The position numbers and the translations under genes are program-made. DNA of 64,000 nucleotides from Monocercomonoides exilis PA203. Its lineage: Eukaryota > Protista > Preaxostyla. The DNA lies in assembly GCA_001643675.2 (NCBI GenBank), contig LSRY02000010.1, positions 930,001-994,000 on the forward strand. Direction: 5' to 3'. Under the pieces are notes generated by a model. The model did no database searches and was not told where the DNA came from. It was given only the letters and a program-made list of their open reading frames with translations. Positions 12,801 through 56,039 of this stretch are shown piece by piece; positions within the stretch are counted from its first letter, which is position 1, and every line of letters begins with the position of its first letter.

Positions 12801-15800
12801 ATTTGCTTCTGAAGATCGCATTCGAACTGGTTATGCAGGGCTTATTAACCCTCGTAATGTCTGTTATATGCTGTCCTTCTTGCAGCAGCTGTTTATGCAT
12901 CTTCCATTCCGATATACTGTTCTTTCATATCCAATGCAGGTTGATCTTCTGATGCAGAAAAAGGGATTGTCGCTTGAAGAAGCAAAGGATTATCTTGAAT
13001 TGAGAGAAAGAAAATATGCACTGAGAGTTGAAAGAGAGAAAAAACGAGATCAGGCCAAGCAAGAAAGAAGGAAATTGGAGAGAGAACGCGAAGAAAAAGC
13101 GAAGAAAAGACAAAAACGAAGAGAAGCGCAAGCAGCCGCTGCAAATGGAGGAGCAAATCCAGCCAGTGACCAAGCTGCTGCCTCCTCATCAGCTGCAACA
13201 AGTGTGTTAGTTGTGCAAAAGGATCCCGAAAGAGAATTCCGCTCGAAGACTCGAGATCAGCGCAGACGCAAGCGCATCAAGGAGCACACCGATGCTGCTA
13301 CGTGGGAACATCTGCGAATGCTGTTTGCACAGATGCAGGAGACAACTCGTCCGGCAGCAGACACGCGAGATTTCTTGCTTCATTACACACAGCCTGGCGG
13401 AATGAATGTGGTGAATGTGAGCGAGCAGATGGATGTGGAGGAGTTTCTGGGGCAGTTCTTCGACAAGCTGGAGTCGTTTTTGTCTGTGCAACAGCTGCCA
13501 AATGTTGTTCAAGTATTCTTTGGAGGGCAGTTTACTCATCAGTTTATCTGTGAAAAAGGTCATGTGAATGAAAGAGAAGAGCCATTCTTTGTGCTGAGCT
13601 GCGATGTGAAGCAGAAGAAGTCGCTGGAAGAGTCGCTTCGTCTTCTTGTCGAAGGAGAGACACTCGACGGTGACAACAAGTATCAGTGCGAGAAATGCGG
13701 AGAGGCTGTGAAGGCTGTGAAAAGAATGGTGATTTCGTCGCTTCCCAATACGTTGTTTGTGCATTTGAAGCGTCTTGATTTCAACTACCAGCAGATGATA
13801 AGGGTGAAAATAAACGATCGGTTTGATTTCCCATTGAAGGACTTGAATATGGCACCTTACTCGAAAGAGGTGTTTACTGCGAGAGAGTCTGCAATTCCAA
13901 AAGAGAAGCTGTTTGAATTTGTGCAGAGAAAATTAGCAGAGCAGGAGAAAGAAGCAGAAGGAGATGCTAAAAAGGATAAAGAAAATGATAAAGACAAAGT
14001 TGAGAGCAAAGAAAGTAATGATCCAAAATCTCCTCCACCATCTTATTCTCCGTTCCAATCAATGACACCTCCGAATGGATCAAGTTCTGGTTCGAGTTCG
14101 GGCTCAAGTTCGTCTTCTTCTTCGATAAGGGACAACTCGTATTACACGTACAATCTTGCGGGTGTTGTTGTGCATAGAGGCACAGCAGAAGCAGGGCATT
14201 ACTACTCATTCATTCAAGAAAGGCAGCCACCATTCAAATGGCTGTGCTTCAATGATTCTCACGTTGAACCATTTGATCCAGCGGATATTGCGGATTCCTG
14301 CTTTGGAGGAGAAGAAGTTTTCTCTTCTGAAACTTATTGGAGTGCAGGTGGGATGGCTGAGAAAGATGCATCGGCTTATTTGCTGGTATATGAGCGAGTG
14401 CATCCACTGAACGAATGGGAAAAGAAAAGAAAGGCAGAAGAGGAAAGAATGGAAGAGGAAAGGAAACTCAATTCGGAAGAATTGACTTTTGGAGAGAAAG
14501 GATCTGATGGTGCATCCGAAAAGGAAATAAAGAAAAAGAGGCAGATGGAAGAAAAGGAAAGAGTTGTTCAGAAGACTGAAGAGGAGTTCAAAGCAAGGCA
14601 GCTATCAAAGGAAAAAGATGCAGCAAGTTCTAATGATGCATCATCGTCATATGCAGGAATTTCTTCTTCTTCTTCAGTTGATGTTGGCTCTTTATCTCCA
14701 ACATCTGTTCATAGTGTGTTGGAAGGTGGCAGCGGGGAAGAAGAGGATGGCGAAGCCTTAGGTGCGACTGACTTGACCAAGTTGCATCTTTCGCGCGAAA
14801 TAGGACCGCTTCTTCCAGATCCTGCCACTGAGCAGCCGAATGCAGCAGCATCTTCTTCTTCTTCTTCTTCCTCTTCCTCTGATTCATTGGCAGGAACATT
14901 AATCACAAGCAAAATCAAAACTCCTGGGTGGGAGCAGAATGTTTACTCTGACGACTCTTACAGAGACACAGCGCTGACAAACAATGGATTTGTTGAGGAT
15001 GACGAAATAAGCAACAAGAATGAGATGGACGGAGATCTCGGACTGGATGACCCATTCGGCATGTCTGCCTTTGGCGATGACATGGACTCTGATTTGCTTC
15101 TTGCACTGCAGCTGAGCATGCAAGATCAGCAGACAAGCAGCACTTCCTCGTCTTCTTCAGGTTCTGAAGGAACAGACGCTGGAAAGGGAGATGATGAGAA
15201 TGACGACGAAGAGGACGAGCCACTTGAGGAAGTGCCAGAGTCTGAGTTGACAGAAGATTCAGAAGATCCAATTCCTGAAGAAGCGCTGATTAAAGAAGCA
15301 AAGGAAAAAGAGAAAGAGAAAGAGAAAGTGGATGACGAAGATGCTGATAAAGAAACTCCATATCAAAAGTTGCTGACCGCTTATCTCCCTCATTTTTCGT
15401 TGACTCATCCTTCGCTTTCAGCATCAGAAGCAAGAAGGCTCATTCCAACATACATTTTAGATCCAATTGAAGCAGACAACCGTCTGCTTAACAGAGAAGC
15501 ATACTTCTTATCTCTTTCGTATGCAAATGCTTTCCATGATGCATTTACTGTGCTGAATGCTGCTGATGTGATGAATGTGAAAGAAAAGTTGGAGAAAAAG
15601 GACAAATGGAAGAAAATGTTGTTGCAACTTGATAAAATCAAATCTTCTGTTGATATGAAGGAGTTAGCTGAAAGTCTGGATTCGTCTGAAGTCAGTGGGA
15701 ATAATGTGGATCAAGAAACTGACTCATGTCAAAGCAAAAAATCCAATAAAAGAGAAAGAATTGAGTTTGCAAAGCAGAGGATTGCAGAACATGAAGCAGA

Positions 15801-25085: not shown

Positions 25086-26093
25086 GGGTCAACTTTTTAA
25101 TGGGACTTTTTCCCTTATTGGCACTTTTTTTGTTTTTGACTGCCAACTTTCAACAAACGTTGATTGGCTTTCAGTACTTCAAAAAACCTTTTTTACAAGT
25201 TTAACACAATTTATTTACAGTTTGCTTTTTAATTTTTGCTTATTACACATTGAGAAATTACGTTTTTTTGTTAAATTTGAAAGGACTTTTACCAGCCAAC
25301 TAGGCAACGTCCAAGAAATTGGATACATGTTTTGAATAGCAAATACTATTATCTAACTACTTTTAAATTCTTTTTTTTCATAAACATTTTTTTCTTGTTT
25401 TTTTCACATTTCATTTTTTTAACAACATTCTAACATAAAACCGATTATTTCTTTGTTCATATAATGAAATGAAAAAAATAAAAATTTGATATGGAAAACA
25501 AATACTTTAATAATGAAGTGCAGAAAAAATAAAACATTCTCATTTTCTATGTGTCCCTAACAGACAAATGGTGCAAACTCAAAATGATTTTCGATCAAAC
25601 TTATGTAACGAAGCTAAGTTAGAGACAAATAGAAAATGAGAATGTTTTATTTTTTCTGCACTTCATTATTAAAGTATTTGTTTTTTATATCAAATTTTTA
25701 TTTTTTTCATTTCATTATATGAACAAAGAAATAATCGGTTTTATGTTAGAATGTTGTTAAAAAAATGAAATGTGAAAAAAACAAGAAAAAAATGTTTATG
25801 AAAAAAAAGAATTTAAAAGTAGTTAGATAATAGTATTTGCTATTCAAAACATGTATCCAATTTCTTGGACGTTGCCTAGTTGGCTGGTAAAAGTCCTTTC
25901 AAATTTAACAAAAAAACGTAATTTCTCAATGTGTAATAAGCAAAAATTAAAAAGCAAACTGTAAATAAATTGTGTTAAACTTGTAAAAAAGGTTTTTTGA
26001 AGTACTGAAAGCCAATCAACGTTTGTTGAAAGTTGGCAGTCAAAAACAAAAAAAGTGCCAATAAGGGAAAAAGTCCCATTAAAAAGTTGACCC
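25086..26093. mobile_element. 1008-bp foldback/palindromic non-autonomous DNA element; 476-bp inverted arms, 56-bp spacer, TA on both flanks
   Basis: 25086-25561 is the reverse complement of 25618-26093 with ~4 mismatches found by eye. Termini are TA|GGGTCAACTT...AAGTTGACCC|TA. No internal ORF. Confidence 0.85.
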
Positions 26094-34171: not shown

Positions 34172-34644
34172 GTTTAATTTTGAATAAGAATATTATTCAA
34201 AAATTATTATCCGAATTTTGATCCGAAAACATATGGAGCGAAAACAAAAAAATTTTAATATTATACATTGAAATAACAATTATTTTGATATGTTCATTTG
34301 AAAAAATCATAAATTGTTTTTCTTATGACAGGAAAAAAATTTTTTCTTTTTTTAAATAAAGAATTATTATCTAATAGCATTTCATGAGAATAGATTTGTT
34401 TTTGAATTAAAATAATAATTTTCTTTGTTTTTTCTTTGGAAAAAATAATAAAAAGAAAAAAGTGGTGAATTGAAAGGAAAAATGTGATACGATTTGTGTT
34501 CAATAAGCTTTTCCTTGAAAGAAGAAAAAAAAAAATACTCCCATTATTTTAATATTAAACAATTCTGCAATTTCAAGCTAAAAATAAGGCAGGAAATTTT
34601 TGGAAAACAAATTGTTCATATGTCAAAATTTTTTGAAAACATAT

Positions 34645-34899
34645 GGGTGATTATTTTTGAAATCATAAATTTTTTCGGGGAGCTTATTTTTCAAATTATG
34701 TTTGTATTTGGTAAAAGATTTTGTATTTGAATGCTGAATTAATCACAAATGTGTAATAGACAAATGTTTTTGCTCAAATAAAGATAATGATGTCATTTGT
34801 TTGTGTTTTCATTTTTCAGTATTTTTCTTTTTATGTTCAAGTTAAATTTTTGAACCGAAAATTTTGAAAGAAAAAATATGCTTTCAAAAATAATAACCC
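34645..34899. mobile_element. MITE-like family A copy 1 (255 bp), ATAT target-site duplication
   Basis: TIR GGGTGATTATTTTTGAAATCATA / TATGCTTTCAAAAATAATAACCC (2 mismatches). ATAT on both sides. Diverged copy at 36288-36540. Confidence 0.8.
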
Positions 34900-34903
34900 A
34901 TAT

Positions 34904-35172
34904 GGGACAAAATATTTGACTTCAGGCATTATCATTGAAAAATGATGCTCTATTGTTTAACTTTTTGTGATTAAAAAAATATGAAAAAAATTGTTTCATT
35001 ATTTTTAGACAAGTGAGATCAAAAAAACATAATGATATAATATCTATGATACTTGTTCACTTATTTGAAAATCTAATTTATTTTGCAATCTGGCTATGTT
35101 CAAAAATGTTGAAAGTGAGACATTTTTTTCATGCTTTGTGCATTAAAAGCTTGAAAGTCCGTATTTTTCCCC
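34904..35172. mobile_element. MITE-like family B copy 1 (269 bp), ATAT target-site duplication
   Basis: Imperfect TIR GGGACAAAATATTTGACTTCAGGC...GCTTGAAAGTCCGTATTTTTCCCC. ATAT on both sides. Homologous to 36910-37555 and to a fragment at 36637-36706. Confidence 0.75.
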
Positions 35173-35397
35173 ATATGTTTGTTGAATTTTCAAATGGAAT
35201 AAAAATTTCAATTATTTTTTCTAATATCTGTTTCCATTCACTAAATTTTTTTTGCAATTAAAACAAAATCTTGATAATGAGACTATTTCCGTTTAAGCGA
35301 AGTTTTTTGAGTGGATCAGAAATTTGGAAAAAAAATGAAATATTTATTCTATTTGAATATTCATCAAACTGAACTTTTCAAGAAGCTTTAGACATAT

Positions 35398-35638
35398 GTC
35401 TAAATTTTTTTGAATAGTTCCTTTTGTTTAATTTTCAAATAAAATAAAAATTACATAAGTCAATCAAATTTTTGTATCCACAAACGATAATTTCACAAAA
35501 AATGAAATAATAACATTGTCAAGATTTTGTTTTCAAAATAGCAAAATTTTGTGAGTGGAAATAGAAATTTGATCGAAACAGGAAATTTTTGTAATATTTG
35601 AAAATAAAACAAATGGAACTTTTCATAAAAATTAAGAC
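35398..35638. mobile_element. MITE-like family C copy 2 (241 bp)
   Basis: ~44-bp TIR GTCTAAATTTTTTTGAATAGTTCCTTTTGTTTAATTTTCAAATA / TATTTGAAAATAAAACAAATGGAACTTTTCATAAAAATTAAGAC (~5 mismatches). Flanks ATAT/AAAT. Confidence 0.75.
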
Positions 35639-36287
35639 AAATGTGAAACTGCTTGAGTTTATAATTGTTTCTTCACACAACCTGTGGTTTGTTATTATCT
35701 TTTTTTTCTTTTTCCTTTTCTTTTTTTTTTTGTACACAAAAATTTGATTAATCTGAACCGAATTCAATTTGCAACTTTCATCACAATCATGAAGGTTTTT
35801 TCAGTTTGATTCTCGCTTCAACGATATTTTTCAAACACTCTGGAGATATCAAATTCTGATTTCATATCAATTTTTTAATTTTTTTTTTTTGATAATGTTT
35901 TTGTTGTTGAAAATTTTATTCTGGGAATATTTTCTTCTGATGGAAAAACACTTATCTGACTGCAAACCAAAAATGTTCGATCGTTCAAAACTAGAAAATA
36001 ACACTGGTTCAGAATAAATAGAGATAAATATTTAAAATCATATCATAAACAACATTAAATAGTTTGAAGGAATTTTGATTATTGAAAATGTGATCAATTC
36101 AGATTTGAATTAAAATTCTATATTTATAAGAACTGCTTGTCTGAATGATATTTTAAACTTGAAACACAATCACAATTATTTGTTTTGTGTGTTCAAAAAA
36201 ATTGAGTTCAATAAAAAACAAAGATTCAATAATTTATAATCTTTTCGGAAAAAGAAATTTCTTTCAAAAAGATTTGTGAAAACATAT

Positions 36288-36540
36288 GTGATTTTTTTTG
36301 AAATCATAACTTTTTTCGGGATGAGGATTTTTCAAAGATTGTTTTCATTTGGGAAGAAATTTTCCATCCAAGTGCTCAAAAAGTCACAACTGTTTCAAAA
36401 ACAAATGCATGATCTGAAATATAAATAAAGAGGTCTTGAATATGCCTGTTCACTTTTCGGTGTTCAATTGTGAACATTTAAAAGAAATTTTCGAACCGAA
36501 ATTTTTGAAAGGAAAAATATGAGTTCAAAAATAATCACCC
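36288..36540. mobile_element. MITE-like family A copy 2 (diverged)
   Basis: Collinear similarity to 34645-34899, including the end TATGAGTTCAAAAATAATCACCC. Left terminus has lost GG. Flanks ATAT/ACAT. Confidence 0.7.
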
Positions 36541-36636: not shown

Positions 36637-36905
36637 GGGACAAAATATTTCACTTTAAACATTTTCATTGAAAAATTATGTTCCTTTGATGAACTTTTTG
36701 TGATCAATATGGGTAATTCTTTTTGAAAAGTCACAAGTGTTTAATTATCATATAATGCAAATATTTCATATTTTGCTCAAATTACTGTTTCCACTCACGA
36801 ATCTTCTTAAGAATGAGTGAAATAACATTATCCAGAAATAGATTCCATATTAGTAAAGTTTTGTATTCTCAGACATAAATTTCATTAAAAAATTAATTTT
36901 TTGAC
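36637..36905. mobile_element. Degenerate MITE fragments: B-family left end (36637-36706), ATAT, then a C-related unit (36711-36905)
   Basis: GGGACAAAATATTTCACTTTAAACATTTTCATTGAAAAA matches the B left end. CTGTTTCCACTCAC matches the C interior. ATAT junctions at 36707-36710 and 36906-36909. Confidence 0.5.
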
Positions 36906-36909
36906 ATAT

Positions 36910-37555
36910 GGGGTTAAATATATCACTTCAAGCTTTTTCATTGATAAATTATGCACTTTTCATTGACTATTTCATATCAACAAACACTATAAAAATGTCA
37001 TAAATTTGTCATTCGTGTTATATTGGAAAACTTAATGTTTTTATTTCAACGATGCCTGTTGAAGGAAATGAAAATCAAATTTACAGTTTGTGCATAAAAT
37101 ACCAGACGTCGCAAAAAATACCGGACAAGATCGATTTCACAATAATTGCAAGAGGAATAATTCTGATATTTTTCCTCAAATTATATCTCATAAATACAAA
37201 TTCATTTGATATTCAAATCTTTCAAAATAGCTTCATTTGTGCTCAGAGAAAATTATTTTTTAAAATCCAAGAGAAATAGGATTTTGAGTTTCTCCGAGGT
37301 TTTTACAGTTCTTTTTTCTGAGCACAAATGAAGCTATTTTGAAAGATTTGAATATCAAATGAATTTGTATTTATGAGATATAATTTGAGGAAAATCATCA
37401 GAATCATTCCTCTTGCGGTTATTGTGAAATCGATCTTTTCCGGTATTTTATGCACAAACTGTATTTTGAAATCTGATAAAGTTTAAAAATGTTATTAGAA
37501 AAACAACTTTATCATGCTTTGTGCATAAAAAGCTTGAAAGTCCATATTTTACCCC
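36910..37555. mobile_element. MITE-like family B copy 2 (266 bp once the nested insertion is removed)
   Basis: Termini ATAT|GGGGTTAAATAT...ATATTTTACCCC|ATAT. The right ~45 bp is nearly identical to the right end of B copy 1. Confidence 0.75.
37084..37461. mobile_element. Tc1/mariner-type foldback MITE (378 bp), TA target-site duplication, nested in B copy 2
   Basis: Termini TA|CAGTTTGTGC...GCACAAACTG|TA with ~150-bp inverted arms and a ~60-bp spacer. B copy 1 has a single TA at the homologous position (AATTTATTTT). Confidence 0.85.
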
Positions 37556-37732
37556 ATATATGAAAATAAAACTTTAGCTTCTTTTTTAAAAAAAAAACCC
37601 ATAAATTTATGATATCTTGAAATATAAGAAATTAAACAGAGAGAAATAAAACTTTTTTTATCTTTTCGATGTTTTGTGTTTTTTAATTTAATTAATTATA
37701 AATTAATAAAGTTTTTCCTTTTCAAACAAGAA

Positions 37733-37806
37733 GTCGCGATGGTGTAGTTGGTTATCACAATTGCCTAACACGCAATAGGTCTCCGGTTCAATCCCGGATC
37801 GCGACA
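37733..37806 (+). tRNA. tRNA-Val(AAC)
   Basis: Acceptor stem GTCGCGA/TCGCGAC+A, D arm TGGTGTAGTTGGTTATCAC, anticodon arm ATTGC-CTAACAC-GCAAT, T arm CCGG-TTCAATC-CCGG. Followed by a T-rich Pol III terminator-like run. Confidence 0.97.
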
Positions 37807-41639: not shown

Positions 41640-41953
41640 AACATTTATGTATTTATGGGAATGGCGTATTCAAAAATTTTAATTATTTTTTTATTTTCGA
41701 ATTGAACTTTTTTTATTCTCATTCGTTTTCGCAGAGATGATTAAATGTTCTTTTGCGATTTAAAAAAAAGTTGAACCAAAATACATAAATTATTTAATTT
41801 ATTGTTGATTTTCTTTTTGAATAGGTTTGTTATTTGGGAAACTGTACATTTGCCAAATTGTTAATTAATTTATTTTTATAAATTTCTTTGTTTTTTATAA
41901 AATTATTCTTTGCCTTTTTATCTATCTCACCGCTTTTATAAGTTCATTTGATC

Positions 41954-56039
<14,086 letters not shown>

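Follow-up and report, generated by a model that had tools for sequence, protein, structure and literature searches.

Two groups of Sola transposons provide the closest described parallels to the elements considered here. A target-site duplication of the form AWWT or AWDT is the hallmark of Sola1, and the ends of Sola1 MITEs, known from insects (Sola1_NA of Bombyx mori, Rhodnius prolixus and Heliconius), start with GG (PMC3845634). Dictyostelid Sola2 elements (DFa-1/2/3 and PPa-1/4/5; Bao and Jurka 2013, PMC3627910 and its supplement 11) have AWWT duplications (ATAT, AAAT and ATTT) together with G...C ends. A precedent for the crowding of such small elements comes from the Tourist and Stowaway multimers of maize, rice and mosquito, whose members insert into and beside each other independently; as summarized in PMC5172404, which cites Jiang and Wessler 2001, of 6600 rice MITEs, over 10% occur in multimers that arose by independent insertions.

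A similar crowding of short elements is found in the metamonad Monocercomonoides exilis. The material analysed here comprises a 64,000-nucleotide stretch of the PA203 assembly (contig LSRY02000010.1, positions 930,001 to 994,000), hereafter the window, 90 further loci of the genome, and genome-wide scans of the 82,301,135-bp assembly (101 contigs). The M. exilis units resemble dictyostelid Sola2 in their AWWT duplications, G...C ends and short imperfect inverted ends, and insect Sola1 MITEs in their target (AWWT/AWDT) and MITE size (248-709 bp in the insects). Yet dictyostelid Sola2 elements run to kilobases and encode a transposase and/or Fanzor, whereas the units described here are non-coding and only 240-270 bp long; and while insect Sola1 MITEs number in the tens to hundreds, those of M. 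exilis reach about 1000 or more per family. Tourist and Stowaway, as described in the summary cited above, belong to other superfamilies (with TA or TAA duplications) and other hosts, but their habit of independent insertion into or beside each other is mirrored in M. exilis, where, of 76 sampled copies, 15 (20%) sit inside or directly against another element.

Anatomy of the nest and chain

The pile-up lies inside a 17.6-kb stretch of 28% G+C that has no ORF of 150 aa or more, bounded by a 6689-aa ORF on one side and by the next genes on the other; a search of 24.3-40.4 kb of the window for ORFs of at least 150 aa found none. The bounding ORF is uninterrupted (4219-24288, plus strand) and includes a UCH/USP domain at about 12835-14391, and a second giant uninterrupted frame of 2761 aa (41948-50233, plus strand) has no Pfam match. 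USP-containing open frames of 4000-10000 aa are numerous in the genome, and a genome search for UCH (PF00443) located multi-copy ORFs of about 1000-1200 aa.

Read directly from the letters, the region is ordered ATAT-(C1 stub)-ATAT-(A)-ATAT-(B)-ATAT-(rest of C1)-ATAT-(C2)-AAAT, and each of A, B, C1 and C2 begins with G and ends with C. The features, in window coordinates, are as follows.

34618-34621, no strand: ATAT, left target-site duplication of C1 (letters read directly; the 4-bp duplication is family-wide)
34622-34640, minus strand: C1 left stub, 19 bp, from a 240-bp C-family MITE that A and B interrupt (healed sequence best matches the C profile on the minus strand)
34641-34644, no strand: ATAT, one copy of the site inside C1 into which A and B inserted (letters read directly)
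34645-34899, plus strand: A, a 255-bp MITE, GGGTGATT...AATAACCC (34-nt TIRs 88% complementary; 89% identity to family consensus)
34900-34903, no strand: ATAT common to A and B, a CCC-ATAT-GGG junction (letters and genome junction count)
34904-35172, plus strand: B, a 269-bp MITE, GGGACAAA...TTTTCCCC (85% identity to family consensus)
35173-35176, no strand: ATAT, third copy of that site inside C1 (letters read directly)
35177-35393, minus strand: C1 remainder, 217 bp (79% identity to the C consensus; oldest element and nest host)
35394-35397, no strand: ATAT common to C1 and C2, a GAC-ATAT-GTC junction (letters and junction counts)
35398-35638, plus strand: C2, a 241-bp foldback-like MITE, GTCTAAAT...ATTAAGAC (arms of about 100 nt (102), 77% complementary; 88% identity to consensus)
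35639-35642, no strand: AAAT, right duplication of C2, one substitution away from ATAT (letters read directly)
36286-36540, plus strand: further A-family copy flanked by ACAT/ACAT (79% identity to consensus)
36637-36706, plus strand: B-family fragment covering consensus positions 1-71, with ATTT before it and truncated at an ATAT (profile search)
36711-36905, plus strand: 195-bp D/C-type element, GGGTAATTC...TTTTTTGAC, between ATAT 36707-36710 and ATAT 36906-36909
36910-37555, plus strand: 646-bp B-family copy interrupted by a foldback of about 376 bp, between ATAT 36906-36909 and ATAT 37556-37559

The C1 stub, one ATAT and the C1 remainder add up to 240 bp. Healed in this way, C1 matches the C-family profile over positions 1-239 (score 118), compared with positions 1-215 (score 111) for the interrupted form, and it is this end-to-end match that establishes the nest as real. 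The parse into nest and chain is genuine, far beyond chance. C1 also has the lowest identity to its consensus (79%, against 89% for A, 85% for B and 88% for C2), as would be expected if it is the oldest element and hosts the nest. The sequence-only reading of this region had placed A and B within C1, with C2 abutting it, and its parse, coordinates and unit lengths (A 255, B 269, C2 241 and healed C1 240 bp) proved exact, as did its description of all units as roughly 240-270 bp, starting with G and ending with C.

A second chain with shared ATATs, made up of the B fragment, the D/C-type element and the 646-bp B copy, lies 1 kb downstream of the first. The foldback within that B copy (37084-37459) belongs to a family whose members measure about 298 bp and have GATC bordering their perfect GATATCTCAATAA-type ends; at least 8 of 80 loci contain it (other copies at L025:2081-2378, L053:2001-2298 and L054:68-365). 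Upstream of the pile-up, a 538-bp element at 25321-25858 combines an AATT duplication with inverted ends (GGATACATGTTTTG) that are perfect over 14 bp, and may represent another G...C/ANNT family. A tRNA-Val (AAC) gene is located about 180 bp downstream of the second chain (37733-37806, plus strand); an Rfam search of 33.0-38.5 kb found nothing beyond it. One sampled locus, L027, is the only one with a tRNA gene and also carries a chain. Targeting of tRNA genes was considered and set aside, a tRNA gene being found within 1.5 kb at only 1 of 60 loci.

Our preferred account, to which we assign a probability of roughly 0.8, is that four non-autonomous cut-and-paste MITEs with Sola-type ends and duplication have formed a nest and chain here, in an AT-rich spacer free of genes, and that no homing or self-amplification is needed to explain it. 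A transposase encoded elsewhere, which we infer to be of Sola type, would bind the inverted ends and excise the element, and its integration with a 4-bp stagger at ATAT-like sites would leave a copy of ATAT on either side, each of them open to later insertions. C1 would have arrived first. A and B would then have entered, one after another, a single ATAT within C1, the exact order of the two being assigned by inference, and C2 and C1 would have ended up sharing the ATAT at the end of C1.

The element families and their target-site duplication

Each of the three units is found well beyond this locus. Genome sequence searches returned between 800 and 990 first-look candidates apiece (A, 802; B, 987; C, 949), with varied flanks, and the 40 matches scored per family were all full-length and had unrelated flanks. 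The 23-nt A-type end, allowing up to 3 mismatches, occurs 3261 times in the genome and its reversed control not once; in metagenome contigs, exact matching to the A-type end found none. A young A subfamily has copies that are 94% identical, and a 1.2-kb element with A-type ends lies at G000:C6:316637-317811. Copies within the sampled loci were annotated by profile searches of the families in place of a de novo scan for duplications and inverted ends, which produced 314 hits but also 222 on reversed sequence, too much noise to be useful. Copy lengths are narrowly distributed, at 252-258 bp for A, 264-273 bp for B and 237-243 bp for C. The units thus have the attributes of MITEs: they are 240-269 bp long and non-coding, with TIRs, a duplication of fixed length, and high copy number with uniform length. 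The three are distinct families of MITEs, each high in copy number and each shown to move independently.

The consensus ends are GGGTGATT for A, GGGACAAA/GGGGGAAA for B and GTCTAAAT for C, along with GGGTRATTC. It had been proposed that three different TIR families are involved, and this is true of B, whose end is distinct past GGG; A and C, on the other hand, share 14 of their 22 terminal bases, leaving B as the sole distinct family of the three by its ends. A fourth family, D (GGGTRATTCTTTTTGAAAAGT), has a C-like interior and matches A at 16-17 of 22 terminal bases, and C to the same extent.

An exact 4-bp duplication surrounds 77 of 112 non-redundant copies, compared with 25 when left and right flanks are paired by shuffling, and a further 19 copies differ by a single base. 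The proposed 4-bp ATAT duplication was therefore borne out, ATAT being the commonest of the exact duplications (39 of 77), followed by ATTT (14), AGAT (6), AAAT and ATGT (4 each), ATCT and AATT (3 each), and single cases of AGCT, ACTT, GTGT and TATG. Identical left and right 4-mers are also seen in 38 of the 73 copies that lack ATAT on both sides. The consensus is ATAT and the general form ANNT, with A in first position in 93% and T in last position in 92%. The outer bases co-vary between left and right: where the first base is not A, the two sides agree 4 times (GTGT/GTGT, GGTT/GGTT and two T/T) against 0.25 expected, which argues that the duplication is of 4 bp and not of TA. The duplicated inner pairs include GC, AT, TT and GA (as in AGCT, AATT, ATTT and AGAT). 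Duplications of 5 and 6 bp are unsupported, with only 0 and 3 copies, respectively.

Target preference is strong. In the sampled neighbourhoods, ATAT took 12.1 insertions for every 1000 sites; the mean was 0.33 per 1000 positions, so that ATAT is used about 36 times as often as the average 4-mer position, and the next preferred targets are ATCT, ACAT and AAAT. Outside the 4-mer, the neighbouring bases show a slight, palindromic bias: G adjoins the duplication in 27% of cases against a background of 14%, and T occupies the following two positions in 47-48% against 35%.

Frequency of shared-site junctions

The sequence-only reading had gone further, and held that the transposase targets C-ATAT-G, so that each insertion of a G...C element doubles the preferred sites and a self-amplifying hotspot arises that builds cassette-like arrays. 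Several observations lean this way, among them the excess of G directly outside the duplication, the presence of two chains less than 3 kb apart in the window, and the counts of shared-site insertions and A-A junctions given below. Taken as a whole, though, we consider the idea unlikely. Its central premise fails at solitary copies, as just 1 of 23 solitary ATAT insertions lies in C-ATAT-G, whereas CATATG makes up 3.1% of the ATAT sites in the loci as background. CATATG is not the target; the elements themselves supply the C and G of the junctions, as their terminal bases.

Whether copies abut each other more often than chance was examined both locally and genome-wide. For the local test, 76 deduplicated focal copies with good duplications were each excised in silico, the healed locus was re-annotated with the A-D profiles, and the landing place of the copy was scored. 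Eleven had landed within another element, 4 exactly at another's duplication, and 61 elsewhere. A local null, in which any 4-mer within 1.5 kb may be used and is weighted by observed 4-mer use, predicts 8.4 nested, 0.63 shared-site and 67 elsewhere; the shared-site figure becomes 1.09 once the bias in flanking bases is included, and narrower neighbourhoods give 0.7-1.2. Nesting is as frequent as the local nulls expect (11 seen, 8.4-11.7 expected), which counts against the hotspot. Shared-site insertion, by contrast, stands at 3.3-6 times the null, from four events only (Poisson p=0.004 against 0.63, and p=0.025-0.036 against 1.09-1.23).

Junction frequency was also counted directly across the genome. 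CCCATAT occurs 7802 times and its reversed control 1312 times, a six-fold skew that places the number of element ends of the CCC|ATAT kind at about 6490 above control; in the loci, 64 of 85 CCCATAT sites are annotated ends, and several of the others are ends of unannotated relatives. The full CCC-ATAT-GGG junction, CCCATATGGG, is found at 45 genome sites against 8 for its control, so that some 1.4% of CCC|ATAT ends adjoin another GGG-type element. The number expected is N²/X, where N is 3245 ATAT-type insertions choosing uniformly among X ATAT sites. With the ATAT density estimated from the window and the loci, this gives 21 junctions if X is taken from 0.0060 per bp over 82.3 Mb, or 34 if insertion is restricted to the non-coding 37% (coding fraction from PMC8767320) at 0.010 per bp. 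Observed over expected is thus 1.1-1.8, far from a self-amplifying hotspot.

Junctions between members of one family were counted with longer, both-sided probes. There are 12 A-A junctions (18-mer, up to 1 mismatch) against about 3-5 expected, and 2 C-C junctions (16-mer) genome-wide, one of them the window's own, against 0.26-0.4 expected. A strong C-C excess had been suspected from GACATATGTC, with 30 sites against 9 for its control, and was dropped: the both-sided 16-mer occurs at only 2 sites, so most of that excess consists of one-sided chance matches.

Overall, the counts are consistent with a junction excess of about two-fold, equal to the G/C bias measured beside the target. A runaway process is excluded, because each insertion contributes one ATAT to a pool of roughly 0.5 million, which new copies enlarge by about 1%. 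Pile-ups therefore occur at about the expected rate, explained by the strong preference for ATAT, the approximately two-fold bias for an adjoining G/C, and crowding into limited non-coding DNA. With around 7000 or more elements in the genome, a few trains with several junctions are to be expected, and the one described here naturally drew attention as a conspicuous case. Other chains are present among the sampled loci (L015, L027, L005 and L078), and two CCCATATGGG junctions lie 259 bp apart at G000:C1:2322504 and G000:C1:2322763, where one A-sized element is abutted on both sides to form a train of at least 3 elements.

That copies abut above chance was borne out in part. Genome-wide the ratio of 1.1-1.8 gives it little room, while the 4 shared-site insertions of the local test (0.63-1.2 expected) do exceed the null, and together with the A-A junctions they leave some room for a modest extra attraction to resident ends. 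That the transposase, or a transposase-end complex, is truly drawn to resident elements, with end-adjacent ATATs used several-fold more than equivalent nearby ATATs, seems to us doubtful; if true, such attraction would create trains able to move later as composite units. Nor do the units form cassette arrays of the integron kind, as they are TIR elements with their own duplications, scattered singly over the genome, and a search for an integrase-like ORF near the pile-up found none.

Superfamily assignment and place in the genome

The 4-bp duplication and the ends support a probable assignment of the A, B and C families to Sola-type (Sola1/Sola2) MITEs. The spectrum of duplications is of the AWWT type (ATAT 39, ATTT 14, AAAT 4 and AATT 3 of 77), and the sequence-only reading was apt in linking AWWT to Sola1, whose hallmark it is called (PMC3845634); it is also reported for Sola2 (PMC3627910). 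The G...C ends agree with those of published Sola1 MITEs and Sola2 elements, a resemblance rather than a formal criterion. Closer likenesses in the ends serve as leads only: the 5' end of the PPa (Polysphondylium Sola2) elements, GTT(T)AAATTTT, resembles the C-family end GTCTAAATTTT, a weak similarity in AT-rich DNA, and the insect Sola1 end GGACCGTTTATTTTGAAAGT... agrees with the A, C and D ends in its GG and in the position of a TTTTGAAA block, with 12 of 22 bases matching the A end, a weak likeness that AT-rich DNA could yield by chance.

Four-base-pair duplications are made by several superfamilies, so mobilization by a non-Sola superfamily such as Ginger, CMC/Chapaev, Academ or one as yet undescribed deserves consideration. 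We judge it a slim prospect. The AWWT spectrum and G...C ends fit published Sola1 and Sola2 ends, and TTAA, the target of piggyBac and Kolobok, is missing from the exact duplications listed, which rules out both. Ginger2 ends are TG...CA, which were not seen. Its target preference, TATA (PMC3845634), differs as well.

The window itself was correctly said to contain no transposase: long ORFs are absent from the AT-rich spacer and Pfam searches of the large ORFs were negative. Across the 90 loci, ORFs near the MITEs belong either to the host (MyTH4, Mtr4, kinases) or to a pogo-like DDE_1 transposase (PF03184), the sole transposase found there, with about 970 first-look candidates genome-wide. 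Copies of this pogo-like family are often within 300 bp of MITEs, and many have intact frames of 403-425 aa (examples at L078:2032-3233, L051:58-1179, L083:3-1148 and L085:189-704). Its presence is one argument for a rival reading, in which the units would be MITEs of the Tc1/mariner or pogo type whose ends are TG...CA and whose duplication is the 2-bp TA, so that ATAT would consist of TA and a single terminal base at either side; a further argument is that the sequence at CATATG is identical under both parsings. Elsewhere the two part company. The concordant outer bases (4 against 0.25 expected) and the duplication of GC, AT, TT and GA as inner pairs both contradict a TA duplication, and the pogo-like element's end, which starts CAGTTATT/CAATTATT, is unlike the MITE ends and unrelated to the 4-bp duplication; this possibility is very improbable.

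That the block is one fixed composite repeat or segmental duplication has only its tight packing to recommend it and can be given almost no weight, since each unit is found alone hundreds of times with its own duplication, the whole block was not found elsewhere, and neighbouring A and B elements at other loci vary in order and orientation (B-A at L015 and L042, A-B at L078).

The paper describing the M. exilis genome assigned 35% of the assembly to unclassified repeats (PMC8767320). Under the Sola-type account favoured here, part of these would be a large population of Sola-type MITEs. The skew in CCCATAT, due to GGG...CCC elements with ATAT duplications, implies several thousand of them, or about 2% of the genome if all are MITE-sized, and because these MITEs sit close to genes, the families belong in the repeat library. 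As for the A/B/C pile-up, it is ordinary transposon behaviour: a strongly preferred 4-bp target that is duplicated on insertion gives end-to-end and nested trains of elements without any special mechanism.
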